This document shows positions 31,719 through 64,000 of a stretch of DNA of 64,000 bases, in pieces. Location: assembly GCA_021613535.1 (NCBI GenBank), contig CP075497.1, positions 186,001-250,000 of the forward strand, written 5' to 3'. Source of the DNA: Adineta vaga. Its lineage: Eukaryota; Animalia; Rotifera. Numbering within the stretch: position 1 is the first letter of the stretch; each line of letters starts with the position of its first letter. Made by a program: the position numbers and the translations under genes. The notes beneath the pieces are model-generated. The model had not been told where the DNA came from. It made no database searches and saw nothing but the letters and a program-made list of their open reading frames with translations.

Positions 31719-32732
31719 TTATTTAGTTTTCACAGATTCAAGATTGTTTCTGTATCTTTTGAGATTCGGGTGGTTCGAAGGTAATGATTGTTCTCCAATT
31801 TCTATTGCCTGCTGATAAAATGAACGAGCTTTAGGATAATTCTTTGCACTAATATATACGTGACCAATGTTGTTGTAAGACATACCCAAGTGAGGATGAT
31901 TTGGCGGAAGTGATTGCTTTTGAATTACCAGAGCTTCGTCGTATGAAGAAAGTGCTCTCTCGTAATCACCCATGCTGTAATATACTAAACCTATGTTGTT
32001 GTAAGATGCAGCCAAGTCAGGATGGTTTGGAGGAAGTGATTTTAAATCAATAGCAAGCACTTTCTTATAATATAAAAGTGCTTTTTCGTAATCACCCATG
32101 CAGTTATACACATTACCAATATTGTTATAAGATTTAGCCAAGTCTGAATGATTTTCAGAAAGTGATTCTTGTCGAATTGTCAAAGCTTTGTTGTGAGCAG
32201 AAAGTGCTTCCAAATTGTTACCCATATTATAAAATGCATTGCCCATCCAGTTATACACATTTGCCATATCAATTGAGCTAGTAGAAAGTGTTCTTTGATG
32301 AATGCCAAGTGATTTCTCATACAATTTTATTGCTTCATCATATTTTCCCTGATTAATTTTAACCATACCGAGTTGATAGTAAATCGAAGCCTTTTCAACG
32401 TCACTCGTTGTTTTATCAAGTAAAGTCCAATAAATTTCTTCAGCTCTATTATATTCACCCATCATTAATAACAGTGCACCTGCTCGATACCATGGATCTT
32501 TATCAGAATAACTTTCTGCTCGAATATATTCACTCAATTTACATAATTCTGGATCATTTTCACTTGTCAGTGTTAAATACACTTCATATAGATGATCTTC
32601 ATTAGACATTGGTCTGATATCATTGATACGAAATACTGAATGCATCGAAAACAGTACTTCATCTTCTCTTTTATAAGCACTAATTTTAGCTACGGATGCA
32701 AATGGTGTTGTTGTTTGAGCAGGATTGACTGA
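31719..32732 (-). pseudogene. 3' half of an ART-TPR gene, cut within the ART domain
   Basis: Frame extends upstream of the listed ORF as VNPAQTTTPFASVAKISAYKREDEVLFSMHSVFRI (paralog: INPETTSTPFAS...EEDEILF); homology stops at ~32730; TPR part intact. Confidence 0.85.
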
Positions 32733-32850
32733 GTAGCTGCCTAATTCGACTTATAATATAAATGGATTTTCATTACTATATATCTATACATCTATAAACA
32801 GATATAGATATAGATATAGATATAGATATACACCTATAGATATAGAAACA

Positions 32851-38800: not shown

Positions 38801-41800
38801 AAGTTAGGAATATAGGAATAGATATAGTTTCATTTATATATAGATATATATACCTCACCCATGTTAAGTTAGGAATATAGGAATAGATATAGTTTCATTT
38901 ATATATAGATATATATACCTCACCCATGTTAAGTTAGGAATATAGGAATAGATATAGTTTCATTTATATATAGATATATAGATATATATACCTCACCCAT
39001 GTTATGTTAGGAATATAGGAATAGATAAAGTTTCATTTATATATAGATATATATACCTCACCCATGTTAAGTTAGGAATATAGGAATCGATATAGTTTCA
39101 TTTATATATAGATATATATACCTCACCCATGTTAAGTTAGGAATATAGGAATAGATATAGTTTCATTTATATATATAGATATATATACCTCACCCATGTT
39201 AAGTTAGGAATATAGGAATAGATATAGTTTCATTTATATATAGATATATATACCTCACCCATGTTAAGTTAGGAATATAGGAATCGATATAGTTTCATTT
39301 ATATATAGATATATATACCTCACCCATGTTAAGTTAGGAATATAGGAATAGATATAGTTTCATTTATATATAGATATATATACCTCACCCATGTTAAGTT
39401 AGGAATATAGGAATAGATATAGTTTCATTTATATATAGATATATAGATATATATACCTCACCCATGTTAAGTTAGGAATATAGGAATAGATATAGTTTCA
39501 TTTATGTATAGATATATATACCTCACCCATGTTATGTTAGGAATATAGGAATAGATAAAGTTTCATTTATATATAGATATATATACCTCACCCATGTTAA
39601 GTTAGGAATATAGGAATCGATATAGTTTCATTTATATATAGATATATATACCTCACCCATGTTAAGTTAGGAATATAGGAATAGATATAGTTTCATTTAT
39701 ATATAGATATATAGATATATATACCTCACCCATGTTAAGTTAGGAATATAGGAATAGATATAGTTTCATTTATGTATAGATATATATACCTCACCCATGT
39801 TATGTTAGGAATATAGGAATAGATAAAGTTTCATTTATATATAGATATATATACCTCACCCATGTTATGTTAGGAATATAGGAATAGATAAAGTTTCATT
39901 TATATATAGATATATATACCTCACCCATGTTAAGTTAGGAATATAGGAATAGATATAGTTTCATTTATATATAGATATATATACCTCACCCATGTTAAGT
40001 TAGGAATATAGGAATAGATATAGTTTCATTTATATATAGATATATAGATATATATACCTCACCCATGTTAAGTTAGGAATATAGGAATAGATATAGTTTC
40101 ATTTATGTATAGATATATATACCTCACCCATGTTATGTTAGGAATATAGGAATAGATAAAGTTTCATTTATATATAGATATATATACCTCACCCATGTTA
40201 AGTTAGGAATATAGGAATAGATATAGTTTCATTTATATATAGATATATAGATATATATACCTCACCCATGTTAAGTTAGGAATATAGGAATAGATATAGT
40301 TTCATTTATGTATAGATATATATACCCTCACCCATGTTATGTTAGGAATATAGGAATAGATAAAGTTTCATTTATATATAGATATATATACCTCACCCAT
40401 GTTATGTTAGGAATATAGGAATAGATAAAGTTTCATTTATATATAGATATATATACCTCACCCATGTTAAGTTAGGAATATAGGAATAGATATAGTTTCA
40501 TTTATATATAGATATATATACCTCACCCATGTTAAGTTAGGAATATAGGAATAGATATAGTTTCATTTATATATAGATATATAGATATATATACCTCACC
40601 CATGTTAAGTTAGGAATATAGGAATAGATATAGTTTCATTTATGTATAGATATATAGATATATATACCTCACCCATGTTAAGTTAGGAATATAGGAATAG
40701 ATATAGTTTCATTTATGTATAGATATATATACCTCACCCATGTTATGTTAGGAATATAGGAATAGATAAAGTTTCATTTATATATAGATATATATACCTC
40801 ACCCATGTTAAGTTAGGAATATAGGAATCGATATAGTTTCATTTATATATAGATATATATACCTCACCCATGTTAAGTTAGGAATATAGGAATAGATATA
40901 GTTTCATTTATATATAGATATATATACCTCACCCATGTTAAGTTAGGAATATAGGAATAGATATAGTTTCATTTATATATAGATATATATACCTCACCCA
41001 TGTTAAGTTAGGAATATAGGAATCGATATAGTTTCATTTATATATAGATATATATACCTCACCCATGTTAAGTTAGGAATATAGGAATAGATATAGTTTC
41101 ATTTATATATAGATATATATACCTCACCCATGTTAAGTTAGGAATATAGGAATAGATATAGTTTCATTTATATATAGATATATATACCTCACCCATGTTA
41201 AGTTAGGAATAATAGGAATAGATATAGTTTCATTTATATATAGATATATATACCTCACCCATGTTAAGTTAGGAATATAGGAATAGATATAGTTTCATTT
41301 ATATATAGATATATATACCTCACCCATGTTAAGTTAGGAATATAGGAATAGATATAGTTTCATTTATATATAGATATATAGATATATATACCTCACCCAT
41401 GTTAAGTTAGGAATATAGGAATAGATATAGTTTCATTTATGTATAGATATATATACCTCACCCATGTTATGTTAGGAATATAGGAATAGATATAGTTTCA
41501 TTTATATATAGATATATATACCTCACCCATGTTAAGTTAGGAATATAGGAATCGATATAGTTTCATTTATATATAGATATATATACCTCACCCATGTTAA
41601 GTTAGGAATATAGGAATAGATATAGTTTCATTTATATATAGATATATAGATATATATACCTCACCCATGTTAAGTTAGGAATATAGGAATAGATATAGTT
41701 TCATTTATGTATAGATATATATACCTCACCCATGTTATGTTAGGAATATAGGAATAGATAAAGTTTCATTTATATATAGATATATATACCTCACCCATGT

Positions 41801-44800
41801 TAAGTTAGGAATATAGGAATCGATATAGTTTCATTTATATATAGATATATATACCTCACCCATGTTAAGTTAGGAATATAGGAATAGATATAGTTTCATT
41901 TATATATAGATATATAGATATATATACCTCACCCATGTTAAGTTAGGAATATAGGAATAGATATAGTTTCATTTATGTATAGATATATATACCTCACCCA
42001 TGTTATGTTAGGAATATAGGAATAGATAAAGTTTCATTTATATATAGATATATATACCTCACCCATGTTAAGTTAGGAATATAGGAATCGATATAGTTTC
42101 ATTTATATATAGATATATATACCTCACCCATGTTAAGTTAGGAATATAGGAATAGATATAGTTTCATTTATATATAGATATATAGATATATATACCTCAC
42201 CCATGTTAAGTTAGGAATATAGGAATAGATATAGTTTCATTTATGTATAGATATATATACCTCACCCATGTTATGTTAGGAATATAGGAATAGATAAAGT
42301 TTCATTTATATATAGATATATATACCTCACCCATGTTATGTTAGGAATATAGGAATAGATAAAGTTTCATTTATATATAGATATATATACCTCACCCATG
42401 TTAAGTTAGGAATATAGGAATAGATATAGTTTCATTTATATATAGATATATATACCTCACCCATGTTAAGTTAGGAATATAGGAATAGATATAGTTTCAT
42501 TTATATATAGATATATAGATATATATACCTCACCCATGTTAAGTTAGGAATATAGGAATAGATATAGTTTCATTTATGTATAGATATATATACCTCACCC
42601 ATGTTATGTTAGGAATATAGGAATAGATATAGTTTCATTTATATATAGATATATATACCTCACCCATGTTAAGTTAGGAATATAGGAATAGATATAGTTT
42701 CATTTATATATAGATATATATACCTCACCCATGTTAAGTTAGGAATATAGGAATAGATATAGTTTCATTTATATATAGATATATATACCTCACCCATGTT
42801 AAGTTAGGAATATAGGAATAGATATAGTTTCATTTATATATAGATATATATACCTCACCCATGTTAAGTTAGGAATATAGGAATAGATATAGTTTCATTT
42901 ATATATAGATATATATACCTCACCCATGTTAAGTTAGGAATATAGGAATAGATATAGTTTCATTTATGTATAGATATATATACCTCACCCATGTTATGTT
43001 AGGAATATAGGAATAGATAAAGTTTCATTTATATATAGATATATATACCTCACCCATGTTAAGTTAGGAATATAGGAATCGATATAGTTTCATTTATATA
43101 TAGATATATATACCTCACCCATGTTAAGTTAGGAATATAGGAATAGATATAGTTTCATTTATATATAGATATATATACCTCACCCATGTTAAGTTAGGAA
43201 TATAGGAATAGATATAGTTTCATTTATATATAGATATATATACCTCACCCATGTTAAGTTAGGAATATAGGAATAGATATAGTTTCATTTATATATAGAT
43301 ATATAGATATATATACCTCACCCATGTTAAGTTAGGAATATAGGAATAGATATAGTTTCATTTATGTATAGATATATATACCTCACCCATGTTATGTTAG
43401 GAATATAGGAATAGATAAAGTTTCATTTATATATAGATATATATACCTCACCCATGTTAAGTTAGGAATATAGGAATCGATATAGTTTCATTTATATATA
43501 GATATATATACCTCACCCATGTTAAGTTAGGAATATAGGAATAGATAAAGTTTCATTTATATATAGATATATATACCTCACCCATGTTAAGTTAGGAATA
43601 TAGGAATAGATATAGTTTCATTTATGTATAGATATATATACCTCACCCATGTTATGTTAGGAATATAGGAATAGATAAAGTTTCATTTATATATAGATAT
43701 ATATACCTCACCCATGTTATGTTAGGAATATAGGAATAGATAAAGTTTCATTTATATATAGATATATATACCTCACCCATGTTAAGTTAGGAATATAGGA
43801 ATAGATATAGTTTCATTTATATATAGATATATATACCTCACCCATGTTATGTTAGGAATATAGGAATAGATAAAGTTTCATTTATATATAGATATATATA
43901 CCTCACCCATGTTAAGTTAGGAATATAGGAATAGATATAGTTTCATTTATATATAGATATATATACCTCACCCATGTTAAGTTAGGAATATAGGAATAGA
44001 TATAGTTTCATTTATATATAGATATATATACCTCACCCATGTTAAGTTAGGAATATAGGAATAGATATAGTTTCATTTATATATAGATATATATACCTCA
44101 CCCATGTTAAGTTAGGAATATAGGAATAGATATAGTTTCATTTATATATAGATATATATACCTCACCCATGTTAAGTTAGGAATATAGGAATAGATATAG
44201 TTTCATTTATATATAGATATATATACCTCACCCATGTTAAGTTAGGAATATAGGAATAGATATAGTTTCATTTATATATAGATATATATATACCTCACCC
44301 ATGTTAAGTTAGGAATATAGGAATAGATATAGTTTCATTTATATAGATATATATATATATACCTCACCCATGTTAAGTTAGGAATATAGGAATAGATATA
44401 GTTTCATTTATGTATAGATATATATACCTCACCCATGTTATGTTAGGAATATAGGAATAGATAAAGTTTCATTTATATATAGATATATATACCTCACCCA
44501 TGTTAAGTTAGGAATATAGGAATCGATATAGTTTCATTTATATATAGATATATATACCTCACCCATGTTAAGTTAGGAATATAGGAATAGATATAGTTTC
44601 ATTTATATATAGATATATATATACCTCACCCATGTTATGTTAGGAATATAGGAATAGATAAGTTTCATTTATATATAGATATATATACCTCACCCATGTT
44701 ATGTTAGGAATATAGGAATAGATAAAGTTTCATTTATATATAGATATATATACCTCACCCATGTTAAGTTAGGAATATAGGAATAGATATAGTTTCATTT

Positions 44801-47800
44801 ATATATAGATATATATACCTCACCCATGTTAAGTTAGGAATATAGGAATAGATATAGTTTCATTTATATATAGATATATATACCTCACCCATGTTAAGTT
44901 AGGAATATAGGAATAGATATAGTTTCATTTATATATAGATATATATACCTCACCCATGTTAAGTTAGGAATATAGGAATCGATATAGTTTCATTTATATA
45001 TAGATATATATACCTCACCCATGTTAAGTTAGGAATATAGGAATAGATATAGTTTCATTTATATATAGATATATATACCTCACCCATGTTAAGTTAGGAA
45101 TATAGGAATAGATATAGTTTCATTTATATATAGATATATATACCTCACCCATGTTAAGTTAGGAATATAGGAATAGATATAGTTTCATTTATATATAGAT
45201 ATATATACCTCACCCATGTTAAGTTAGGAATATAGGAATAGATATAGTTTCATTTATATATAGATATATATACCTCACCCATGTTAAGTTAGGAATATAG
45301 GAATAGATATAGTTTCATTTATATATAGATATATATACCTCACCCATGTTAAGTTAGGAATATAGGAATAGATATAGTTTCATTTATATATAGATATATA
45401 TACCTCACCCATGTTAAGTTAGGAATATAGGAATAGATATAGTTTCATTTATATATAGATATATATACCTCACCCATGTTAAGTTAGGAATATAGGAATA
45501 GATATAGTTTCATTTATATATAGATATATATACCTCACCCATGTTAAGTTAGGAATATAGGAATAGATATAGTTTCATTTATATATAGATATATATACCT
45601 CACCCATGTTAAGTTAGGAATATAGGAATAGATATAGTTTCATTTATATATAGATATATATACCTCACCCATGTTAAGTTAGGAATATAGGAATATAGTT
45701 TCATTTATATATAGATATATATACCTCACCCATGTTAAGTTAGGAATATAGGAATAGATATAGTTTCATTTATATATAGATATATATACCTCACCCATGT
45801 TAAGTTAGGAATATAGGAATAGATATAGTTTCATTTATATATAGATATATATACCTCACCCATGTTAAGTTAGGAATATAGGAATAGATATAGTTTCATT
45901 TATATATAGATATATATATATATATACCTCACCCATGTTAAGTTAGGAATATAGGAATAGATATAGTTTCATTTATATATAGATATATATACCTCACCCA
46001 TGTTCAGTTAGGAATATAGGAATAGAGATAGTTCCATTTACATATAGATATACCTCACCCATGTTCAGTTAGGAATATAGGAATAGATATACTTTCATTT
46101 ATATATAGATATACCTCACTCATGTTAAGTAAGGAATATAGGAATAGATATAGTTTCATTTATATATAGATATATATACCTCACCCATGTTAAGTTAGGA
46201 ATATAGGAATAGATATAGTTTCATTTATATATAGATATATAGATATATATACCTCACCCATGTTAAGTTAGGAATATAGGAATAGATATAGTTTCATTTA
46301 TATATAGATATATATACCTCACCCATGTTAAGTTAGGAATATAGGAATAGATATAGTTTCATTTATATATAGATATATAGATATATATACCTCACCCATG
46401 TTAAGTTAGGAATATAGGAATAGATATAGTTTCATTTATATATAGATATATATACCTCACCCATGTTAAGTTAGGAATATAGGAATAGATATAGTTTCAT
46501 TTATATATAGATATATATACCTCACCCATGTTAAGTTAGGAATATAGGAATAGATATAGTTTCATTTATATATAGATATATATACCTCACCCATGTTATG
46601 TTAGGAATACAGGAATAGATATAGTTTCATTTATATATAGATATATATACCTCACCCATGTTAAGTTAGGAATACAGGAATAGATATAGTTTCATTTATA
46701 TATAGATATATATACCTCACCCATGTTATGTTAGGAATACAGGAGTAGATATAGTTTCATTTATATATAGATATATATATACCTCACCCATGTTATGTTA
46801 GGAATACAGGAATAGATATAGTTTCATTTATATATAGATATATAGATATATATACCTCACCCATGTTAAGTTAGGAATATAGGAATAGATATAGTTTCAT
46901 TTATATATAGATATATAGATATATATACCTCACCCATGTTAAGTTAGGAATATAGGAATAGATATAGTTTCATTTATATATAGATATATATACCTCACCC
47001 ATGTTAAGTTAGGAATATAGGAATAGATATAGTTTCATTTATATATAGATATATATACCTCACCCATGTTAAGTTAGGAATATAGGAATAGATATAGTTT
47101 CATTTATATATAGATATATATACCTCACCCATGTTAAGTTAGGAATATAGGAATAGATATAGTTTCATTTATATATAGATATATATATATAACCCATGTT
47201 AAGTTAGGAATATAGGAATAGATATAGTTTCATTTATATATAGATATATAGATATATATACCTCACCCATGTTAAGTTAGGAATATAGGAATAGATATAG
47301 TTTCATTTATATATAGATATATATTCCTCACCCATGTTATGTTAGGAATACAGGAGTAGATATAGTTTCATTTATATATAGATATATATATACCTCACCC
47401 ATGTTATGTTAGGAATACAGGAATAGATATAGTTTCGTTTAAATATAGATATATATACCTCACCCATGTTAAGTTAGGAATACAGGAATAGATATAGTTT
47501 CATTTATATATAGATATATAGATATATATACCTCACCCATGTTAAGTTAGGAATATAGGAATAGATATAGTTTCATTTATATATAGATATATATACCTCA
47601 CCCATGTTAAGTTAGGAATATAGGAATAGATATAGTTTCATTTATATATAGATATATATACCTCACCCATGTTAAGTTAGGAATATAGGAATAGATATAG
47701 TTTCATTTATATATAGATATATAGATATATATACCTCACCCATGTTAAGTTAGGAATATAGGAATAGATATAGTTTCATTTATATATAGATATATATACC

Positions 47801-50800
47801 TCACCCATGTTAAGTTAGGAATATAGGAATAGATATAGTTTCATTTATATATAGATATATATACCTCACCCATGTTAAGTTAGGAATATAGGAATAGATA
47901 TAGTTTCATTTATATATAGATATATACCTCACCCATGTTAAGTTAGGAATATAGGAATAGATATAGTTTCATTTATATATAGATATATAGATATATATAC
48001 CTCACCCATGTTAAGTTAGGAATATAGGAATAGATATAGTTTCATTTATATATAGATATATATACCTCACCCATGTTAAGTTAGGAATATAGGAATAGAT
48101 ATAGTTTCATTTATATATAGATATATATACCTCACCCATGTTAAGTTAGGAATATAGGAATAGATATAGTTTCATTTATATATAGATATATATATATATA
48201 CCTCACCCATGTTAAGTTAGGAATATAGGAATAGATATAGTTTCATTTATATATAGATATATATACCTCACCCATGTTAAGTTAGGAATATAGGAATAGA
48301 TATAGTTTCATTTATATATAGATATAATATATATACCTCACCCATGTTAAGTTAGGAATATAGGAATAGATATAGTTTCATTTATATATAGATATATATA
48401 CCTCACCCATGTTAAGTTAGGAATATAGGAATAGATATAGTTTCATTTATATATAGATATATAGATATATATACCTTTAAGTTATTAATATAGGAATAGA
48501 TATAGTTTCATTTATATATATATATATAGATATATATACCTCACCCATGTTAAGTTAGGAATATAGGAATAGATATAGTTTCATTTATATATAGATATAT
48601 ATACCTCACCCATGTTAAGTTAGGAATATAGGAATAGATATAGTTTCATTTATATATAGATATATATATATATATACCTCACCCATGTTAAGTTAGGAAT
48701 ATAGGAATCGATATAGTTTCATTTATATATAGATATATATACCTCACCCATGTTAAGTTAGGAATATAGGAATAGATATAGTTTCATTTATATATAGATA
48801 TATAGATATATATACCTCACCCATGTTAAGTTAGGAATATAGGAATAGATATAGTTTCATTTATGTATAGATATATATACCTCACCCATGTTAAGTTAGG
48901 AATATAGGAATAGATATAGTTTCATTTATATATAGATATATATACCTCACCCATGTTAAGTTAGGAATATAGGAATCGATATAGTTTCATTTATATATAG
49001 ATATATATACCTCACCCATGTTAAGTTAGGAATATAGGAATAGATATAGTTTCATTTATATATAGATATATATACCTCACCCATGTTAAGTTAGGAATAT
49101 AGGAATAGATATAGTTTCATTTATATATAGATATATATACCTCACCCATGTTAAGTTAGGAATATAGGAATAGATATAGTTTCATTTATATATAGATATA
49201 TAGATATATATACCTCACCCATGTTAAGTTAGGAATATAGGAATAGATATAGTTTCATTTATATATAGATATATATACCTCACCCATGTTAAGTTAGGAA
49301 TATAGGAATAGATATAGTTTCATTTATATATAGATATATAGATATATATACCTCACCCATGTTAAGTTAGGAATATAGGAATCGATATAGTTTCATTTAT
49401 ATATAGATATATATACCTCACCCATGTTAAGTTAGGAATATAGGAATAGATATAGTTTCATTTATATATAGATATATATACCTCACCCATGTTAAGTTAG
49501 GAATATAGGAATAGATATAGTTTCATTTATATATAGATATATAGATATATATACCTCACCCATGTTAAGTTAGGAATATAGGAATAGATATAGTTTCATT
49601 TATGTATAGATATATATACCTCACCCATGTTAAGTTAGGAATATAGGAATAGATATAGTTTCATTTATATATAGATATATATACCTCACCCATGTTAAGT
49701 TAGGAATATAGGAATAGATATAGTTTCATTTATATATAGATATATATACCTCACCCATGTTAAGTTAGGAATATAGGAATAGATATAGTTTCATTTATAT
49801 ATAGATATATAGATATATATACCTCACCCATGTTAAGTTAGGAATATAGGAATAGATATAGTTTCATTTATATATAGATATATAGATATATATACCTCAC
49901 CCATGTTAAGTTAGGAATATAGGAATAGATATAGTTTCATTTATATATAGATATATATACCTCACCCATGTTAAGTTAGGAATATAGGAATAGATATAGT
50001 TTCATTTATATATAGATATATAGATATATATACCTCACCCATGTTAAGTTAGGAATATAGGAATCGATATAGTTTCATTTATATATAGATATATATACCT
50101 CACCCATGTTAAGTTAGGAATATAGGAATAGATATAGTTTCATTTATATATAGATATATATACCTCACCCATGTTAAGTTAGGAATATAGGAATAGATAT
50201 AGTTTCATTTATATATAGATATATATACCTCACCCATGTTAAGTTAGGAATATAGGAATAGATATAGTTTCATTTATATATAGATATATATACCTCACCC
50301 ATGTTATGTTAGGAATATAGGAATAGATATAGTTTCATTTATATATAGATATATATACCTCACCCATGTTAAGTTAGGAATATAGGAATAGATATAGTTT
50401 CATTTATATATAGATATATAGATATATATACCTCACACATGTTAAGTTAGGAATATAGGAATAGATATAGTTTCATTTATATATAGATATATAGATATAT
50501 ATACCTCACCCAATGTTAAGTTAGGAATATAGGAATAGATATAGTTTAGTTATAGATATATATAGATATATATACCTCACCCATGTTAAGTTAGGAATAT
50601 AGGAATAGATATAGTTTCATTTATGTATAGATATATATACCTCACCCATGTTATGTTAGGAATATAGGAATAGATAAAGTTTCATTTATATATAGATATA
50701 TATACCTCACCCATGTTAAGTTAGGAATATAGGAATCGATATAGTTTCATTTATATATAGATATATATACCTCACCCATGTTAAGTTAGGAATATAGGAA

Positions 50801-53800
50801 TAGATATAGTTTCATTTATATATAGATATATATACCTCACCCATGTTAAGTTAGGAATATAGGAATAGATATAGTTTCATATATATATAGATATATATAC
50901 CTCACCCATGTTAAGTTAGGAATATAGGAATAGATATAGTTTCATTTATATATAGATATATATACCTCACCCATGTTAAGTTAGGAATATAGGAATAGAT
51001 ATAGTTTCATTTATATATAGATATATATATATATATACCTCACCCATGTTAAGTTAGGAATATAGGAATAGATATAGTTTCATTTATATATAGATATATA
51101 TACCTCACCCATGTTAAGTTAGGAATATAGGAATAGATATAGTTTCATTTATATATAGATATATATACCTCACCCATGTTAAGTTAGGAATATAGGAATA
51201 GATATAGTTTCATTTATATATAGATATATATACCTCACCCATGTTAAGTTAGGAATATAGGAATAGATATAGTTTCATTTATATATAGATATATATACCT
51301 CACCCATGTTAAGTTAGGAATATAGGAATAGATATAGTTTCATTTATATATATATATATATACCTCACCCATGTTAAGTTAGGAATATAGGAATAGATAT
51401 AGTTTCATTTATATATAGATATATATACCTCACCCATGTTAAGTTAGGAATATAGGAATAGATATAGTTTCATTTATATATAGATATATATACCTCACCC
51501 ATGTTAAGTTAGGAATATAGGAATAGATAAAGTTTCATTTATATATAGATATATATACCTCACCCATGTTAAGTTAGGAATATAGGAATAGATATAGTTT
51601 CATTTATATATAGATATATATACCTCACCCATGTTAAGTTAGGAATATAGGAATAGATATAGTTTCATTTATATATAGATATATATACCTCACCCATGTT
51701 AAGTTAGGAATATAGGAATAGATATAGTTTCATTTATATATAGATATATATACCTCACCCATGTTAAGTTAGGAATATAGGAATAGATATAGTTTCATTT
51801 ATATATAGATATATAGATATATATACCTCACCCATGTTAAGTTAGGAATATAGGAATAGATATAGTTTCATTTATGTATAGATATATATACCTCACCCAT
51901 GTTATGTTAGGAATATAGGAATAGATATAGTTTCATTTATATATAGATATATATACCTCACCCATGTTAAGTTAGGAATATAGGAATCGATATAGTTTCA
52001 TTTATATATAGATATATATACCTCACCCATGTTAAGTTAGGAATATAGGAATAGATATAGTTTCATTTATATATAGATATATATACCTCACCCATGTTAA
52101 GTTAGGAATATAGGAATAGATATAGTTTCATTTATATATAGATATATATACCTCACCCATGTTAAGTTAGGAATATAGGAATAGATATAGTTTCATTTAT
52201 ATATAGATATATATACCTCACCCATGTTAAGTTAGGAATATAGGAATAGATATAGTTTCATTTATATATAGATATATATATACCTCACCCATGTTAAGTT
52301 AGGAATATAGGAATAGATATAGTTTCATTTATATATAGATATATATACCTCACCCATGTTAAGTTAGGAATATAGGAATAGATATAGTTTCATTTATATA
52401 TAGATATATATACCTCACCCATGTTAAGTTAGGAATATAGGAATAGATATAGTTTCATTTATATATAGATATATATACCTCACCCATGTTAAGTTAGGAA
52501 TATAGGAATAGATATAGTTTCATTTATATATAGATATATATACCTCACCCATGTTAAGTTAGGAATATAGGAATAGATATAGTTTCATTTATATATAGAT
52601 ATATATACCTCACCCATGTTAAGTTAGGAATATAGGAATAGATATAGTTTCATTTATATATAGATATATATACCTCACCCATGTTAAGTTAGGAATATAG
52701 GAATAGATATAGTTTCATTTATATATAGATATATATACCTCACCCATGTTAAGTTAGGAATATAGGAATCGATATAGTTTCATTTATATATAGATATATA
52801 TACCTCACCCATGTTAAGTTAGGAATATAGGAATAGATATAGTTTCATTTATATATAGATATATATACCTCACCCATGTTAAGTTAGGAATATAGGAATA
52901 GATATAGTTTCATTTATATATAGATATATATACCTCACCCATGTTAAGTTAGGAATATAGGAATAGATATAGTTTCATTTATATATAGATATATAGATAT
53001 ATATACCTCACCCATGTTAAGTTAGGAATATAGGAATAGATATAGTTTCATTTATATATAGATATATATACCTCACCCATGTTATGTTAGGAATATAGGA
53101 ATAGATATAGTTTCATTTATATATAGATATATATACCTCACCCATGTTAAGTTAGGAATATAGGAATAGATATAGTTTCATTTATATATAGATATATATA
53201 CCTCACCCATGTTAAGTTAGGAATATAGGAATAGATATAGTTTCATTTATATATAGATATATAGATATATATACCTCACCCATGTTAAGTTAGGAATATA
53301 GGAATAGATATAGTTTCATTTATATATAGATATATATACCTCACCCATGTTAAGTTAGGAATATAGGAATAGATATAGTTTCATTTATATATAGATATAT
53401 ATACCTCACCCATGTTAAGTTAGGAATATAGGAATAGATATAGTTTCATTTATATATAGATATATATACCTCACCCATGTTATGTTAGGAATACAGGAAC
53501 AGATATAGTTTCATTTATATATAGATATATATATACCTCACCCATGTTATGTTAGGAATACAGGAATAGATATAGTTTCATTTAAATATAGATATATATA
53601 TACCTCACCCATGTTATGTTAGGAATACAGGAATAGATATAGTTTCGTTTAAATATAGATATATATACCTCACCCATGTTAAGTTAGGAATATAGGAATA
53701 GATATAGTTTCATTTTATATATAGATATATATACCTCACCCATGTTAAGTTAGGAATATAGGAATAGATATAGTTTCATTTATATATAGATATATATACC

Positions 53801-55395
53801 TCACCCATGTTAAGTTAGGAATATAGGAATAGATATAGTTTCATTTATATATAGATATATATACCTCACCCATGTTAAGTTAGGAATATAGGAATAGATA
53901 TAGTTTCATTTATATATAGATATATAGATATATATACCTCACCCATGTTAAGTTAGGAATATAGGAATAGATATAGTTTCATTTATATATAGATATATAT
54001 ACCTCACCCATGTTAAGTTAGGAATATAGGAATAGATATAGTTTCATTTATATATAGATATATATACCTCACCCATGTTAAGTTAGGAATATAGGAATAG
54101 ATATAGTTTCATTTATATATAGATATATAGATATATATACCTCACCCATGTTAAGTTAGGAATATAGGAATAGATATAGTTTCATTTATATATAGATATA
54201 TAGATACCTCACCCATGTTAAGTTAGGAATATAGGAATAGATATAGTTTCATTTATATATAGATATATATACCTCACCCATGTTAAGTTAGGAATATAGG
54301 AATAGATATAGTTTCATTTATATATAGATATATAGATATATATACCTCACCCATGTTAAGTTAGGAATATAGGAATAGATATAGTTTCATTTATGTATAG
54401 ATATATATACCGTAAACATGTTAAGTTAGGAATATAGGAATAGATATAGTTTCATTTATATATAGATATATATACCTCACCCATGTTATGTTAGGAATAC
54501 AGGAATAGATATAGTTTCATTTATATATAGATATATATATACCTCACCCATGTTATGTTAGGAATACAGGAATAGATATAGTTTCGTTTATATATAGATA
54601 TATATACCTCACCCATGTTAAGTTAGGAATATAGGAATAGATATAGTTTCATTTATATATAGATATATATACCTCACCCATGTTAAGTTAGGAATATAGG
54701 AATAGATATAGTTTCATTTATATATAGATATATATACCTCACCCATGTTAAGTTAGGAATATAGGAATAGATATAGTTTCATTTATATATAGATATATAT
54801 ACCTCACCCATGTTAAGTTAGGAATATAGGAATAGATATAGTTTCATTTATATATAGATATATATACACTCACCCATGTTCAGTTAGGAATATAGGAATA
54901 GATATAGTTTCATTTATATATAGATATATATACCTCACCCATGTTAAGTTAGGAATATAGGAATAGATATAGTTTCATTTATATATAATATATATATATA
55001 TACCTCACCCATGTTAAGTTAGGAATATAGGAATAGATATAGTTTCATTTATGTATAGATATATATACCTCACCCATGTTATGTTAGGAATATAGGAATA
55101 GATAAAGTTTCATTTATATATAGATATATATACCTCACCCATGTTAAGTTAGGAATATAGGAATCGATATAGTTTCATTTATATATAGATATATATACCT
55201 CACCCATGTTAAGTTAGGAATATAGGAATAGATATAGTTTCATTTATATATAGATATATATACCTCACCCATGTTAAGTTAGGAATATAGGAATAGATAT
55301 AGTTTCATTTATATATAGATATATATACCTCACCCATGTTAAGTTAGGAATATAGGAATAGATATAGTTTCATTTATATATAGATATATAGATAT
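32851..55395. repeat. ~22.5 kb tandem array of a 65-bp unit (roughly 340 copies, estimated from length/unit)
   Basis: Consensus ATGTTAAGTTAGGAATATAGGAATAGATATAGTTTCATTTATATATAGATATATATACCTCACCC; frequent 73-bp variants with an extra AGATATAT. Confidence 0.98.
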
Positions 55396-57377: not shown

Positions 57378-60300
57378 ATGTTGTCTCGTTTACAAAAGCC
57401 AAGTCTTCGTGATTTTATGATGATGCAAGGACAAACTCGAACACGATTATGTGTTAATAGTGCCATTTTTGATCCATGTGAAAAGTTGACGGAATTAACA
57501 CCGTTTGAAAAGGCATCACTTATGTCTTGGTATTCCGACACCACTGTTGACAAAGGTCTCAATCTGTATATATTGTTACATTATTTATCTGCTGTGAATA
57601 ACAATTCATATTATTATCACTATGTAAATAATGGTAATCCTGATGGTACAAATATGTTCGGACATGTGATTGGTACATCTGGTAATTATTGAAAATATAT
57701 CGCTATCTATTTTCCAAACAACGCGTCATCTTTACATAGGTAGTGGTAAATCATCAGCTTTAACACCTCATATGGATGCGTTAAATCGAACGTTGTCACA
57801 AATGGATATCAAGCAAGAATATATCCAAAAACCAAATAAAAACATCGAGTTGTTATTTGAACAACCATTCATTGTTTCAAATGTAAGAAAAACATTGTAG
57901 ATACTATTTTATTTGTTTTATCGTATTGTAGTCGACAACTCTTCAAGTATTCCGAAGTTTAATATATGGTAATCGCATATTGTGTTCGACCGAATGCGAT
58001 ACATTACTTTCGAATTTGGGTGTTTATGGAAATCAATACAATGATCCTCGTTTTGCTGAAAATGTCAATATGCTTATTCAAATGTTCGATGGAACTAAAC
58101 ATCAGAATCGAGCAACTCTTTCCACATCATACAATATTCCTGAAGGAAGACGTGCTTCAATTATTGGTGCAAGTGTTGGCGATCCATATGCACGTGTATC
58201 TCAACAACATTACGAGTAGGACTGAATAAGACTTTGAATTTTTCTAAATCTATTCATCTACATAGAGGAAATGGTGTTAGTGGTGCTCATAATCGTTTCA
58301 CACATTATCCTTGTCCTGTTATGAAAGCTATCAAAACCAATTCTGGTACCAGTGGAGTGGTATCGAATATGGTACCATCACTTCAACATGTATATACAGT
58401 ATCGTTTTTGCTGGATAAAGTTGAATATATCCCACGACAGAATGTATATGACAAATCCGAAAAGAAACAATCAAGTAAATATGCTTTTCAATTTATTCAT
58501 GATGTTTGTTTATTTTTTCCTCTAGACGTATTTCATTCGGACGTTGAAGAGAAATGGAATCGTTTACGTCCGACATCTGATCGTGAATATTGTCACTCGC
58601 CTTCAAAAATCAAAATTGATCTTGAAGCAGCTGAAAATGATGCTTCATATGAACACAGTAAAAGTGCTCATTATTATATGTTCAATCGTGTTTATCAGCA
58701 ATGGCAAGAAGCTACAGAAACGGAAAAACAGGAACATGAAGCTATCATTAGCTTTAAAAATTCAACGAAAATTCCTCGGTAATAAATATTCAGTGTATGC
58801 ATTTTGAATTATTTGTTATTGACCAAATTTAGTTTTATTTGTAATTTTGCTCGATTTCGAACAATTATGGATATTTTATGGGATGATGATGTGTATCCAT
58901 TGATTGAAATATCAGAAATCGTTAAATCACCATACCGTGTTTCCGATGATTTTATTGACGCTGTTAAAAAGGTTATCGAAAAACGATTTCCAGTAAATTT
59001 ACGTACAGATGATGGCACGAAAATCGTCGTTATTGAAAAAAGCACTGCTATTATGGGTGACTTATTTTTTGGTCATGTTGACTATGTGTCTCGACAATTG
59101 TTTGATCTATCTTCAATTCAAGAAAAATTTAGTGCATCTCCGATTGTATCTCGATTACAAAATAGGTATGTTTTTCTTTACTTGACTTGCGCGATTTATT
59201 TCATTAACAGTAGTGGTGGTGCCCAAGAAAAGAACAGTTCCGGTGTAACTGTGTATGCCGATGCTTTGGTTATAATCTTATCGAAATTCATTTTTTTTTC
59301 AACAGCTACATTCACTTCTTATCGAGAATTTCATAACAATAAAGAACGATTATCGGCAGCGATCAAATACTTAATTGACAATGGATTAGTATTTCAACCA
59401 TTGAACAAAAGTCGATTTATCAAAGGAACTCGTTCAAGTTATGCAATGGCAACACCCAAGCAAATCAAGCAAAATAACTTGGCTATTGAAGCATTGATCA
59501 ATTTGAATTTAACTACAATTGATTATGAACAATTGTGGCAAGATTGCTTATTATTTTCACCTGATGTTGCATCAAAAATCGATAAAACTGCAATTGATCA
59601 TATTAATTCTAATTTAATTGATTATATTTCAATTATTCACCGTTTGGGTGATGCCAATGATCCTGTTGCTCAAGAAATTTTAAAGCCTGGCTTATTTAAT
59701 GGTCAAATTGGTATCAATCCTTTAGCAAATACATTTTCTTTGTCACCAGAACACACCCTTCAATCCAAAGATGATGATTACATTACGAATCTAATGCATA
59801 AACTGTGCATTTCGGCTGTTGCTCAAACCCAAAACAACGACTCATCAAAAAAAGAACGAACGTCATTAACCGTCCACAATCATCCGATCAATAATACTGA
59901 AACAACCATGATCGATTTATCTGAAAATGTTCAACGGCTACAAACGCAATTCCAATCTTCATCAATTTCTATCGATGTTCTTTCAAGTAAAAACGATCGA
60001 ATCGAAAATTCTAGAGATCAAGTTTTATTGAAAGAAAAAGGTAAGCTGTTATCATATAAAAAATATGTCTTTATTAAATATTTTGATTTGTTTGCAATCC
60101 AGGGAATGAAACTTTTTCAATGTCGCATATGGACAGCATCATCATGAATGAATATGTAAACGTATCTGAAGCACTCGATACTGGTAAAATGATTTTTCAC
60201 ATAGATCAAATATATTTGATTTTTTTTTCTTAAGAATTGGAAAATAATCATGCGAAAACGAAAATTATCCACAATGATGTAGAAATTATTTATAACATGG

Positions 60301-61740
60301 ATTATACAAGTAAAAGACATTGACTAATATTCCCTTGTTGTGATATTATTTTTATTCTTTCCTCAGATAATTCAACTTCAGATATTAATAAATCCTTACC
60401 AACTGCTTTCAAAAGTATCGTTGTAGAAAATATGTCCGCTATTGATATCATGAATATTGATACAGCAACTGACCGTATGTAAAACATATATCTTAATGCG
60501 AATCTTTTATCCGTTCATTTAGTTTCGACTTCTGTTGAATATGATTATGTACTCGATGTTTCTATGAATATTCATACTGCTGATTCAAGTTTACAACAAC
60601 AACAACAACAACAACGACGAAATCAGGTCTTATATTTCTAATGATTTCATTGGATTTTCAAACTATCTTCTTTAGGAATCGTTTTCTGAACTTTCATCAT
60701 TTGTTTCAACTGAAAAGAATAATGACGAACATCATGATTATTTTGAATCCAATTCTATGGAAACCGGTATCTAGACAGTTGAATTTTTTCTCATGCATCT
60801 AGTGGTCACATTTAGATTTTCAATCCGATTTCAAAACAACATCATTTTCCCATACAACATCTACTGAATATATCAATGTATCAAAAGATATGAATGAAAA
60901 TTCTACTGAAAGCAATACTGAAAGCAATACCGAACCAAATACAACTCCTGGTAAAATCAACAAAGTTTTATATAATCTTTTATTTTTATATTTTTCTAAA
61001 TTAGAACTTGTTGCTTTATCAAAGAGACTTATGTTAAAATCATTTATTGCATTTACAAAAACAGATGTTACTCGATTATTTAATAGTGCTGAAACAAAAA
61101 ATTCTGTTATTGGATATTTAAAACATCATAAATTGATTAAGGAAATTGCTGATTTATTTGTATCAAGTATTCCAACAAAAAAAACAATCAAATATGAGAC
61201 TGGCTATGTAAAAATATTTCCTGCTTCTAAATCGGCATCTGACACATCTTCTTTTGAATCCAAACTTCGAGTAACAGTTGGAATTGGATTAGATGAATAT
61301 ATTGATAATGTTTTGATCGATGAAAACTTACCGACAGAAAGTCCAATTGTTAACAACATATTTAATACAACATATCATAAATGGTTATTAAATCGTCATT
61401 GGTACGATAAAATCAAAGCTGGAGAAGTTAATGTATATTTTCAAAACAAAGTTAAATGCTTAGAAGAGAACATTAGTTCTCCTATTCAGCCTATTACTAC
61501 AATATCAAAGGATAACGGTAAAGAAACATTCAATTCTTTTCAATTCAATTGTATAAAAAATTTCATTTTTTTACTTCAGTTATTGATTTGTTTGATCAGC
61601 CACGCTCCAGTATGACTTCTACTCAACGAACAGACAAGGAATTACGACGACTTGGTGTTAAACGACAAAAAAAGTCGAATAATGAACCATTACCAAAACG
61701 ACAACGAAAACCAAAACGATTTCCTGACGATGATCAATAA
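57378..61740 (+). CDS. Multi-exon DUF3987-like (MCM-related AAA+) P-loop ATPase/putative helicase with possible winged-helix regions and a basic C-terminal NLS
   Basis: Splicing 57682-57739, 57883-57931 and 58216-58265 gives NMFGHVIGTSGSGKSSA (Walker A), ILCSTECDTLL (Walker B-like), LIQMFDG...RAT, SIIGAS and SGAHNRF (Arg finger); ends PKRQRKPKRFPDDDQ-stop; start codon and exons at 60.0-60.9 kb uncertain. Confidence 0.7.
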
Positions 61741-62187: not shown

Positions 62188-64000
62188 ATGGACATATCAG
62201 AATCTAATAGAAAATTCTTGTTGAATATTTTCCAATATATTGCACCATCACATATAGCTTTATTCTTACGTCTTATTAGACTGTATCCAATGAATATTCT
62301 CAACGATAATAGGAAGAGAGAACAAACGATTTTGACTATTGTTAATGAAGTTACTGGTAATAACTATCAAGCCGATATTTGGCCAAACATCATGTCGATT
62401 AATCGTCTACCAGAGTTAGTTGAACAAGTTCTACTCAATGATGAACATCAACGATTATTATCGGCTATTGAAAAGTTACAAACAAGATTTGAATTACAAC
62501 CACATCGTTTTCGAATCTATCAACTACTTCCAAAAATCAAAATATGTGTTATATGTGGAAATCAATTGGGAGAAGCCATTTTCGATGAAATATGCATTAT
62601 TATAGGTCGTACTAATATAAATCATGGAGTACTTTATAAGAATGAATGCTGTAATATTGTTTATAAATATGGACATGCACGCAATCGACGAACACGTGAA
62701 AGATTTGTTGTACCAAATGCAATATTCAAACAAGAATATATTCATTTATTCGATCATTTAATATATGAACGCTTATTGTTAATTGGATTTACTAATCTTA
62801 TTCAACAAGCGGCATCGAACTTTCAAACATATACAAGTGCAACTAACGCTGATATTGATCAAAATCGACATTTTAATGAACAAGATTCTACTCAAGATAA
62901 ACTGCAATCAAAATCGTTTGCATCAGTAAATATTGTTAAATGATTATCGATGAAAAAATTCTCATTTTTTTCGATTATTCTCATATTAGACTTGGATATG
63001 GTTTGAAATATCTCGATATCTATTGTTTATGACTAATTCACAGACCATTCAAATTCCAGATATTATCCAGCGCTTATCTCATGATTTATATTTCGAAGCA
63101 AACAGCCTTTATTTTTATGAACTTTTCGTTAAATTTTGGTCTCGACATGGGCAAGTCAAAGGATGTGAATGTCAAGCCAAAGACACATGTATGCTCAATT
63201 TTGTTTTTGACACACATATGAAGGCGCATCGATTAGTATGTGCATACACTGGATCATGTGATGAATCAATACCAGAATTAGGACCTGTAGCTATTGGCTG
63301 TCCTCGTCCACCACTTCGTTCATCATCAAGTATATTAAAAAATGAATTAGGTATGTACAGAGAAGATTGTTCATAATACAGTTGTTGATTCTATGTATTT
63401 TTTTCTTCGAAGTTAATGATAAGATGAAATGTAAATACTATTGTATAAATCATTACAATCAATCTTTAATTAAAAATGATTCACACGATCCTTTAGTTAC
63501 TGAAGCACTTGAACGAGATCGTATTGCAGATTTATTCGAAGCAAATGATGAATGTACCGTTCATCGTGATGAAGATGATAGAGAACATAAACGACGTACT
63601 GCTGGATTTATGGCTATAGTATCCAATTGTAACATTATCATAGGATGGAATGAAAGTGTTCGTTCTGAAGGAATGCGTCGTAATACTTATCATCTATTAA
63701 AATACCTTCATTTAGGTGGAATATTACCACCAGCTGCTGCATATGATTCAGCATGTACTTTTATTGCATATTTAAAAAATCAATATTGTTTATCAATTCA
63801 ACAATCACCTTATGTCGATGAGTTATTACAAAAAAAATACTGTATTGATAGATTTCATAGACGTAACCATACACGACCTGAATGTAAATCAACGTTATCA
63901 TGTTCACATCCTGATAATCGCCCATTTTTCGATAATGAAAATACACAAGTGTGTGAACAATTATTTTCTCATTTCACAAAACTCAAAGCTACTTTACGAT
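62188..64000 (+). CDS. KDZ (Kyakuja-Dileera-Zisupton) transposase with CxC-type cysteine clusters; runs off the window
   Basis: Exons 62188-62925, 62990-63350, 63413-end; CVIC...CCNIVY, FVFDTHMKAHRLVC, GC..PP, YYCINH, RTAGFMAIVSNCNII, RSEG, YDSAC, IDRFHRRNH...C, NTQVCEQ; no stops. Confidence 0.88.

Follow-up and report, generated by a model that had tools for sequence, protein, structure and literature searches.

Introduction

The nearest described relatives of the gene analysed here are the DUF3987 proteins of phages and bacterial mobile elements, which are classified as an MCM-related SF6 family whose members have a wHTH at the C-terminus (PMC4889955) and have been described as replicative-type helicases (PMC4889955, PMC11724360); one of them, AgaPH, is a 5′-3′ helicase for whose activity Walker A and Walker B are required (PMC11724360). 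Bdelloid rotifers possess canonical DUF3987 genes next to KDZ+CxC5 transposase genes (e.g., at C1:17.43 Mb of the genome analysed here), encoding proteins of about 400 aa with an intronless domain, a clear PF13148 match (92 bits) and a match to the phage 'DNA helicase' PHROG; a UniProt example is the 'DUF3987 domain-containing protein' of Rotaria socialis. The second group of relevance comprises the Zisupton/KDZ transposons, which combine the KDZ domain with inverted terminal repeats, multi-exon genes and 8-bp target-site duplications (TSDs) (PMC12730594, PMC9297572), the last being produced by Zisupton (PMC12730594). In the literature that we searched, these elements are described with no gene other than that for the transposase, apart from a TET/JBP gene in fungi; neither a helicase-like ATPase nor TatD is mentioned.

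In general, the transposase of eukaryotic cut-and-paste transposons is thought to be sufficient. Helicases are familiar from Helitrons, in which an HUH nuclease is fused to an SF1 (Pif1-like) helicase and which are devoid of terminal inverted repeats (TIRs) and TSDs. The accessory proteins MuB, TnsC and IstB of bacterial transposons, in turn, are P-loop ATPases encoded beside a DDE-type transposase gene within the same element.

Here, we analysed a 64,000-nucleotide window of the genome of the bdelloid rotifer Adineta vaga, which contains what is very probably a transposon-borne DUF3987-type ATPase gene. The predicted protein shares with its phage and bacterial counterparts the order and register of the Walker A motif, Walker B strand, sensor strand and RF motif, as well as residence on a mobile element. 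It differs from them in being eukaryotic and divided by 14 spliceosomal-type introns, in scoring below the Pfam cut-off, in having a Thr-Glu rather than an Asp-Glu pair in Walker B, and in carrying some 800 additional C-terminal residues with an NLS-like tail; unlike in most bacterial DUF3987 contexts, its partner is not a primase or polymerase but a DDE-type KDZ transposase. The host group, the KDZ pairing and a homologous ATPase domain are common to this gene and the canonical bdelloid ones, but the gene in the window is three times longer, intron-rich, far more diverged and accompanied by TatD. The likeness to MuB, TnsC and IstB is one of functional analogy, the ATPase being of another family, whereas Helitrons are comparable in that a eukaryotic transposon encodes a helicase, although the rotifer element has a separate SF6-type gene adjoining a cut-and-paste transposase. 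The combination of a DUF3987-like ATPase with TatD inside a KDZ transposon was not found in the literature searched.

A gene with a predicted 15-exon structure

The gene model read from the sequence has a coding sequence of 3624 nt (1207 aa), with each of the 15 exons open in phase, and 14 introns of 45-62 bp, all GT-AG, with a GC content of 24.4% compared with 32.9% in the exons. Its features are as follows (window positions, all on the forward strand):

57378..61740, +, predicted DUF3987-like ATPase gene: 15 exons, 14 GT-AG introns, 1207 codons; ATG at 57378, TAA at 61738-61740
57378..57681, +, exon 1: N-terminal portion of the ATPase domain; its last base is the first base of a Walker A Gly codon
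57682..57739, +, intron 1: 58 bp, phase 1, dividing Walker A as GTSG/SGKS
57740..57882, +, exon 2: remainder of Walker A (SGKSS) and the next helix
57883-57931, +, intron 2: 49 bp, GT..AG
57932..58215, +, exon 3: ATPase core, recognised by conservation in paralogues and Rotaria and by motif register
57977-58000, +, exon 3: Walker B strand ILCSTECD; MFDG lies in the same exon
58109-58117 and 58154-58186, +, exon 3: RAT and the sensor strand ASIIGASVGDP, respectively
58216-58265, +, intron 3: 50 bp, GT..AG
58266..58474, +, exon 4: NRF motif at 58291-58299, aligned to the DUF3987 arginine-finger-type motif GLLSRF
58475-58525, +, intron preceding exon 5: 51 bp, in frame
58526..58778, +, exon 5
58833..59165, +, exon 6: conserved region past the ATPase core, 74-79% aa identity to the other copies
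59166-59210, +, intron preceding exon 7, in frame
59211..60040, +, exon 7: first 'winged-helix-like' segment at about 59320-59470; no known domain found
60103..60950, +, exons 8-13: low-complexity, poorly conserved linker with a poly-Q run
60103-60183, 60235-60309 and 60367-60474, +, exons 8-10
60523-60626, 60676-60766 and 60816-60950, +, exons 11-13
61005..61517, +, exon 14: conserved C-terminal module; no known domain found
about 61043-61225, +, exon 14: second 'winged-helix-like' segment
61580..61740, +, exon 15: bipartite basic tail KRQKKSNNEPLPKRQRKPKR at 61660-61719, then the stop codon

The original prediction had postulated three GT-AG introns, and these do exist at the places claimed (58, 49 and 50 bp in the sequence), but eleven more had been missed, two of which are in frame and stop-free in the window copy. 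Its central assertion, that the Walker A motif GTSGSGKS is formed solely by splicing, is borne out: intron 1 interrupts a Gly codon and, if it is retained, the frame ends with GTSGNY and a stop. The remaining motifs follow in the predicted spliced product in the order foreseen, with STECDTLL, MFDG, RAT and SIIGAS encoded by exon 3 and NRF by exon 4.

Chance is a poor explanation for this splicing pattern because, in DNA alignments of the three genomic copies, the exons are conserved, with changes at third positions, whereas the introns have diverged and accumulated indels, yet retain GT and AG. Furthermore, the first five intron positions are shared with Rotaria magnacalcarata, and splicing in an independent database gene model of the Rotaria orthologue (P0001) yields the same GTSGSGKSS...STECDTLL...NRF succession. 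Sequence and comparative evidence are in accord that the stretch is a real gene with the predicted 15-exon structure. Existing rotifer annotations wrongly split or fuse this gene.

A divergent DUF3987-type ATPase domain

The affinity of the ATPase with DUF3987 lies below the resolution of conventional domain searches, which were run exon by exon or with database proteins. Pfam yielded nothing relevant on single exons, and the three family members that we scanned, namely, the Rotaria orthologue P0001, P0012 and P0015, matched collinear parts of PF13148 at 18.5, 24.1 and 14.5 bits, none reaching the gathering cut-off of 27 bits. The window locus was absent from the matches of a whole-genome PF13148 search and was not reached when a HMMER profile of genuine rotifer DUF3987 proteins was run against the genome. 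Searches of NCBIfam and PHROGs returned nothing for the family, a sequence search among solved structures gave no match, and BLASTP of exon 3 against a genuine rotifer DUF3987 open reading frame aligned the Walker B strand alone (E 0.35). The AlphaFold model of a fragment of the Rotaria orthologue, built on a 26-row alignment, was too poor for a fold search (pLDDT 42.8).

Profile-to-profile comparison, by contrast, brings the relationship to light. Using hhalign, the family profile matched the profile of genuine rotifer DUF3987 proteins, every member of which carries PF13148, with a probability of 94.5% and an E value of 7.7e-8 over 291 columns, an alignment in which both Walker motifs, the sensor strand and the RF motif coincide in position; a single genuine DUF3987 member was matched at 89% and E 2e-6. 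Intermediate loci were matched by the family profile at E 1e-11 to 9e-16, and three such loci (of the L018-L020 type) were matched by PF13148 at 8e-4 to 0.04 genome-wide. Given that the link emerges from profile-to-profile matching alone and that the HMMER profile misses the gene, the homology is remote. With this qualification, residues 1 to ~430 make up a divergent P-loop domain of the DUF3987 type as judged from sequence, in keeping with the original proposal of a domain typical of prokaryotic mobile genetic elements (MGE) divided by spliceosomal-type introns. Approximately two thirds of the 1207-aa protein are without a recognisable domain.

At the level of individual motifs, GTSGSGKS, which conforms to GxxxxGK[ST], aligns to GYPGANKS of genuine DUF3987 members, and GAHNRF aligns to GLLSRF or GLMARF, in agreement with the arginine-finger-type pattern GLLxRF. 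The Walker B motif departs from the expected Asp-Glu pair: where relatives have SDEID or WDEAL, the ATPase reads ILCS-T-E-CD, with Thr in place of Asp and the Glu retained. This replacement is common to all copies in Adineta and Rotaria. It may slow or otherwise alter the hydrolysis of ATP.

The epithet 'MCM-like', also part of the original prediction, was not reproduced by our comparisons. Similarity to the MCM (PF00493, SF6) AAA+ core was not detected when the family profile was compared by hhalign with the genome's own MCM exon (Walker A to sensor 1), the alignment being confined to a 13-residue Walker B strand (E 0.07); the genuine DUF3987 profile aligned to the same exon over Walker A alone (E 0.015). 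The connection to MCM is thus one drawn from the literature (PMC4889955).

No counterpart of the long C-terminal region was found by hhalign in canonical rotifer DUF3987 proteins. Neither of the two segments previously described as winged-helix-like matched anything in Pfam, and hhalign of exons 6 and 7 against the DUF3987 profile found no match. For exon 7, an ESM Atlas search gave no usable match, the AlphaFold model was too poor for a fold search (pLDDT 33.1), and hhalign aligned the exon weakly to the tail of a related rotifer gene (E 0.03-0.05). The basic C-terminal end that had been noted is genuine, in the form of the conserved bipartite tail in exon 15, an exon with 67-78% aa identity to the other copies.

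A KDZ transposon surrounding the gene

The ATPase gene lies within a 36-kb element that extends from window position 32731 to C6:254795, 4.8 kb beyond the window end. Behind its left inverted repeat come a sub-terminal array of 65-bp repeats and then, in this order, the genes for the ATPase, the KDZ transposase and a TatD-type nuclease; an inverted repeat array precedes the right inverted repeat. In addition to the gene above, the window contains the following parts:

32723-32730, directly before the left inverted repeat: target-site duplication GATTGACT, 8 bp
32731..32765, +, left terminal inverted repeat GAGTAGCTGCCTAATTCGACTTATAATATAAATGG: start shared by 10 copies
32850..55390, strand not given, sub-terminal tandem repeat array: 65-bp unit, 339 copies, 22.5 kb, detected by TRF
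62188..64000, +, KDZ transposase gene (PF18758): continues beyond the window to the equivalent of 64170

Homology among the 10 copies begins precisely at 32731, and the terminal 19-mer occurs 66 times in the genome, compared with once for a control; it is also found 1 kb upstream of the Rotaria orthologue. The inverted ends are imperfect and about 35 bp long. Two of the three copies that carry the ATPase gene are flanked by TSDs identical at all 8 positions (GATTGACT for the C6 copy and CGTGCATC for the copy at C1:16.19 Mb), the third copy having none, and a paralogous, uninterrupted (empty) site is present in the genome. Three short inverted-repeat pairs that were also examined had no TSD at any of them. 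A shared terminus as sharp as this, the presence of TSDs and the empty site led us to reject segmental duplication as the source of the copies. The 65-bp array occupies the equivalent position in the C1:16.19 Mb copy, where it spans about 1.1 kb, and an inverted repeat array adjoins the right end of the element. The 22.5-kb satellite in the window thus represents the greatly expanded sub-terminal repeat of a single transposon.

The KDZ transposase domain is recognised at 30.5 bits (cut-off, 26.6) in the gene starting at 62188, which is kept in both paralogous copies and in Rotaria. TatD (PF01026) is matched in collinear exons at 39, 29 and 18 bits, and each of the three copies contains it. Genes for a capsid, a polymerase or packaging, which would have suggested a virus or provirus, were not seen. 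In Rotaria, the order of ATPase followed by KDZ is retained, with one TatD exon matching at the end of the locus; the flanking genes of the Rotaria and window loci differ, whereas the element terminus is common to both. The ATPase gene is co-mobilised with the transposase.

This arrangement bears directly on the original suggestion that a prokaryotic mobile-element helicase had been domesticated to serve the rotifer. A host gene of this kind might well be under strong purifying selection and have, in another genus, an orthologue that shares its intron positions and its NLS-like tail, as is the case here. However, the gene is enclosed by inverted repeats and 8-bp duplications, along with the KDZ transposase and TatD nuclease genes, in three dispersed copies; no copy was found outside an element (3 of 3 lie within one); a paralogous empty site exists; and what the Rotaria locus has in common is the element terminus rather than the flanking genes. 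With the gene inside a TIR- and TSD-bounded element whose gene order is kept in Rotaria, domestication is unsupported, and we consider it highly improbable.

Beyond this family, the ATPase-plus-KDZ pairing recurs in at least 4 other lineages in the genome, whereas TatD is confined to the family of the window element and absent from the other KDZ plus ATPase loci, which implies that the cargo of KDZ elements varies. It is conceivable, then, that the ATPase itself is a passenger outside the transposition chemistry, replicating the excised copy, acting with TatD in post-excision repair or counteracting silencing, and the long C-terminal region lacking in canonical rotifer DUF3987 proteins might be taken in the same sense. 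Yet, the ATPase is encoded in every KDZ lineage examined in the genome, which favours a core over an optional role, and a passenger function appears rather improbable.

Selection and age of the copies

Comparisons with the two paralogues (dS 0.70) and with Rotaria (dS 1.05) gave dN/dS values of 0.03-0.13 across exons 1-4 (0.08-0.11 for exon 1 and 0.03-0.05 for exon 3) and of 0.23-0.25 overall. Exon 3 retains 90% aa identity to Rotaria and 96-97% to the paralogues, whereas exons 8-13 either have a dN/dS from 0.4 to above 1 or find no match. Judging from these sequence comparisons, the ATPase core is under strong purifying selection across rotifer genera, and the copies of the element are old (dS about 0.7). 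Age alone could suggest a decaying, non-functional relic with motifs left over, and the gene at C1:18.07 Mb is indeed impaired by damage to a splice acceptor, by an insertion of 1 nt and by a stop. The window copy, however, is open across all 15 exons and, given the dN/dS of the core, we regard the relic interpretation as scarcely credible.

Possible role of the ATPase in transposition

Taken as a whole, the explanation that we somewhat favour is that of a transposon-borne, spliced DUF3987-type ATPase that acts in the nucleus and aids the transposase on element DNA. The stretch is very probably the second gene of a large cut-and-paste KDZ (Zisupton-like) DNA transposon in a bdelloid rotifer, and its product would be imported into the nucleus via the C-terminal bipartite basic tail, assemble into an ATP-driven oligomer and act on element DNA together with the transposase and perhaps with the nuclease. 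The likeliest role, by analogy with DUF3987 helicases of bacterial elements, would be unwinding or remodelling of DNA at the transposon ends or at the donor or target gap, although we put the chances of such a helicase function in transposition at about even.

No primase domain was found by Pfam in any exon of the ATPase gene, as had been stated at the outset, and linkage or fusion to a primase (AEP or DnaG) is likewise lacking, the other genes of the element being those for the KDZ transposase and TatD. The absence of primase and polymerase, together with the constant pairing of the ATPase and transposase genes, would also suit an ATP-dependent switch or matchmaker that, similar to MuB, TnsC and IstB, governs target choice or licenses strand transfer instead of unwinding DNA; the Thr that replaces the Walker B Asp in every copy from Adineta and Rotaria fits a slowly hydrolysing nucleotide-state switch better than a processive motor. 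Against this stand the nearest family, DUF3987, which consists of replicative-type helicases with one member that unwinds DNA (PMC4889955, PMC11724360), and the Pfam scans, which show no similarity to the MuB, TnsC and IstB families. We deem such a switch unlikely, albeit worthy of consideration.

Whereas the helicases known from eukaryotic transposons, those of Helitrons, belong to a different chemistry, here it is a KDZ/Zisupton-type element that is always accompanied by a phage-type helicase-like ATPase. As a tentative proposal, bdelloid KDZ transposons might be multi-enzyme machines, in which a DDE-type transposase operates with a recruited replicative-type helicase from prokaryotic MGE and, in the present family, also with a TatD nuclease; if so, their transposition would include an unwinding or a replicative/repair step unknown for eukaryotic cut-and-paste elements. 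The gene is also a clear example of how a gene of prokaryotic mobile elements can become fully 'eukaryotised', having 14 introns and a tail resembling nuclear-import signals, and yet stay within a mobile element. The constancy of the ATPase and the strong selection on its core may point to an unrecognised requirement of KDZ transposition or to a new mode of movement.

Splicing and constraint of the ATPase gene

In the Adineta vaga assembly (100.8 Mb in six contigs; ~30% G+C in the window), the ATPase gene (57378-61740, + strand) opens with an ATG at 57378, and direct reading of the unspliced frame ends at GTSGNY*. Excision of a 58-bp GT..AG intron fuses G|GT into GTSGSGKSS, so that, as originally predicted, Walker A is assembled only after splicing. 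The three introns of that prediction, 57682-57739 (58 bp), 57883-57931 (49 bp) and 58216-58265 (50 bp), proved exact on direct reading, and the predicted order of STECDTLL, MFDG, RAT, SIIGAS and NRF after Walker A is correct. The gene model was extended by DNA alignment of the window copy with its two paralogues, at C1:16.19 Mb and C1:18.07 Mb. Across the three copies, exons are kept, with differences mostly at third positions, and introns have diverged with indels, yet retain GT and AG. The alignments reveal eleven further introns, including two (58475-58525 and 59166-59210) that had been read through because they are in frame and stop-free in the window copy. The final model has 15 exons, all open in phase, and 14 GT-AG introns of 45-62 bp, with a GC content of 24.4% in introns vs 32.9% in exons; the CDS of 3624 nt comprises 1207 aa plus TAA at 61738-61740. 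The gene also occurs in Rotaria magnacalcarata, where its first five introns occupy the same positions, and the splicing of an independent gene model from this species (P0001, CAF2264892.1) exactly matches our prediction.

Nei-Gojobori counts, made exon by exon against the two paralogues and Rotaria, gave an overall dN/dS of 0.23-0.25, with dS of 1.05 vs Rotaria and 0.70 vs the paralogues. The ratio is 0.03-0.13 in exons 1-4, lowest in exon 3 (0.03-0.05; amino acid identity 90-97%), 0.28-0.39 in the conserved C-terminal modules, and ranges from 0.4 to above 1 in the low-complexity linker of exons 8-13. At the level of sequence, these comparisons demonstrate a spliced and constrained gene, predicted to encode a DUF3987-type P-loop protein. 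The window copy is intact, and that at C1:18.07 Mb carries damage (splice acceptor, 1-nt insertion, stop). A reading of the window copy as decaying was excluded.

In the public Rotaria annotation, the orthologue is split into two models of 263 and 889 aa (P0001 / L022:10001-14217, the Rotaria locus), and in another record (P0003, 761 aa) it is fused to an MA3-domain protein, with an intron retained; these models are probably annotation artefacts. The ~1.8 kb from the satellite to the ATG (55603-57377) share ~80% identity with the C1:16.19 Mb copy, equal to that of the coding DNA, contain no long ORF and have no Rotaria counterpart; they may represent a promoter/5' UTR or transposase-binding DNA.

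A remote relative of DUF3987

Homology searches were made with single exons of the gene or with database proteins. Pfam searches of single exons gave no match, and an exhaustive HMMER search of exon 3 against 1.84 billion representatives retrieved only 15 proteins, the credible ones being exclusively of rotifer origin or unnamed fragments in metagenome and read assemblies; the family is therefore narrow. The closest named proteins all come from bdelloid rotifers (Rotaria, Adineta and Didymodactylos). Three family members match PF13148 (DUF3987) below the cut-off, each in a different segment, the segments being collinear: P0001 (18.5 bits, model positions 8-60), P0015 (14.5 bits, 146-230) and P0012 (24.1 bits, 301-363).

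The same genome contains genuine DUF3987 genes, among them an intronless 408-aa ORF at C1:17.43 Mb (PF13148, 92 bits), which matches a phage 'DNA helicase' PHROG (8e-16) and has homologues across bdelloids. Profile-profile comparison of the ATPase family (A4) with genuine rotifer DUF3987 proteins (A6) gave 94.5% probability and E 7.7e-8 over 291 aligned columns, with Walker A, the Walker B strand, the R.T motif, the sensor strand and GxxxRF in register; against the single C1:17.43 Mb ORF, A4 scored 89% (E 2e-6). Intermediate loci are matched by A4 (E 1e-11 to 9e-16), three of them also by PF13148 (8e-4 to 0.04 genome-wide). Given the profile-profile match and the sub-threshold PF13148 hits, yet a HMMER profile of the genuine rotifer family that fails to reach the gene in a search of the genome, we file the ATPase as a remote DUF3987 relative, short of a Pfam-grade member.

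A published classification places DUF3987 in SF6 as an MCM-related family that has a winged helix at its C-terminus (PMC4889955). Of the original DUF3987/MCM-type assignment, the DUF3987 part stands as a remote relationship and the MCM part comes from the literature: in a specificity control, A4 matched the MCM exon of this genome (Walker A to sensor 1) at E 0.07 over 13 residues, and the published link was not reproduced with profiles against this exon. Exon 7, which holds the first of the two segments earlier noted as winged-helix-like, retrieved nothing in an Atlas search and aligned to the tail of a related rotifer gene only at E 0.03-0.05 (hhalign). AlphaFold models of the family (pLDDT 42.8 and 33.1) are too poor to use.

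The ATPase gene belongs to a KDZ transposon

Similarity between the window and both paralogous loci extends well past the ATPase gene, and two further genes lie in the same transposon:

62188 to the equivalent of 64170, + strand (as the ATPase gene), next gene: KDZ transposase (PF18758, 30.5 bits vs cut-off 26.6)
C6:252353-253504 (L021:4853-6004), past the window's end: TatD-type DNase (PF01026)

PF01026 matches three consecutive collinear TatD exons (39, 29 and 18 bits), with the motifs DSHCH, GEIGLD and VVIHS. TatD is present in all three Adineta copies of the transposon, and its first exon also matches the extreme end of the Rotaria locus; none was found at the other KDZ + DUF3987 loci examined. 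ATPase and KDZ genes are paired in at least four other lineages of the genome, diverged from one another. Mutually diverged DUF3987-type + KDZ pairs outside the window lie at C1:17428001-17438000 (L015), C5:773001-783000 (L016), C3:18349001-18359000 (L017) and C3:15250001-15260000 (L018), L015 and L016 being near-identical copies with the intronless 408-aa DUF3987 ORF and a KDZ+CxC5 transposase.

Adineta and Rotaria align over the coding parts and one 34-nt stretch, nothing else; this stretch lies at 32731 in the window and, in Rotaria, 1 kb upstream of the gene. In ten aligned genomic occurrences, the first shared bases are precisely GAGTAGCTGCC..., the DNA to their left being unrelated, and 66 genomic occurrences of the terminal 19-mer were counted vs one of a control. 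The 19-nt terminus is identical in Rotaria (L022:8834-8852) and the window (32731-32749), amid non-coding DNA unalignable between the two and genes with synonymous divergence >1; this identity suggests a strongly constrained, putative transposase-binding end.

The inverted partner of the left terminus (CATGAGCTGCCTAATTATAGTTATAATATAAATGG) lies 4.8 kb beyond the window's end. The window copy carries GATTGACT at both flanks, and the C1:16.19 Mb copy (C1:16179029-16194518) carries CGTGCATC at both; no target-site duplication was found at the C1:18.07 Mb copy. The window transposon is inserted in a gene that belongs to a repeated family, and both flanks align to a single uninterrupted paralogue (L013), with an 8-bp overlap corresponding to the duplication. 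The interrupted ORF comprises 352 aa upstream (31719-32730, - strand) and 308 aa downstream (L021:7296-8349, - strand); the uninterrupted paralogue (L013:1353-3138, C1:18.08 Mb) lies within a few kb of the transposon copy at C1:18.07 Mb. Inverted ends with 8-bp duplications are the Zisupton signature (PMC12730594), which the window transposon shares. Three short loci with the same inverted terminus (L025:255-1213, L026:261-626 and L027:272-635; ~360-960 bp) had no matching duplication at the expected positions.

The 22.5-kb satellite at 32850-55390 (339 copies of 65 bp, 94% matches) is the greatly expanded left sub-terminal repeat of the transposon, and because of this expansion the window element reaches 36 kb. 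The other copies measure 14.6-15.5 kb, that at C1:16.19 Mb having merely ~1.1 kb of the repeat. A short inverted repeat array adjoins the right end (about C6:254248-254734).

Our analysis demonstrates constant linkage of the ATPase gene to a KDZ transposase, together with which it is mobilised. The domestication originally envisaged is not supported, the gene lying within a TIR/TSD-bounded element alongside the transposase and TatD.

Possible role of the ATPase

The C-terminal tail KRQKKSNNEPLPKRQRKPKR is kept in other copies of the gene and matches the classical bipartite nuclear-import pattern. The protein would most likely be imported into the nucleus via this tail, assemble as an oligomer and, together with the transposase and perhaps TatD, drive ATP-dependent unwinding or remodelling of transposon DNA. 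For one DUF3987 member, 5'-3' helicase activity dependent on Walker A and B has been shown (PMC11724360). In every copy of the ATPase family, the Walker B Asp is replaced by Thr (S-T-E-C-D vs S-D-E-I-D or W-D-E-A-L). This replacement leaves room for a role as a switch or matchmaker, which, by analogy with MuB, TnsC and IstB, we keep open beside unwinding or remodelling.

In the literature searched (Repbase not covered), we found no link of DUF3987 or TatD to KDZ, Zisupton, Kyakuja or Dileera elements, nor, in the literature searched, a report of DUF3987 in eukaryotes. Some canonical rotifer homologues are already labelled 'DUF3987 domain-containing' in UniProt; the ATPase gene's own family is unnamed. 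We rate the window element as a KDZ/Zisupton-type transposon bearing a helicase-like accessory gene and a nuclease gene.
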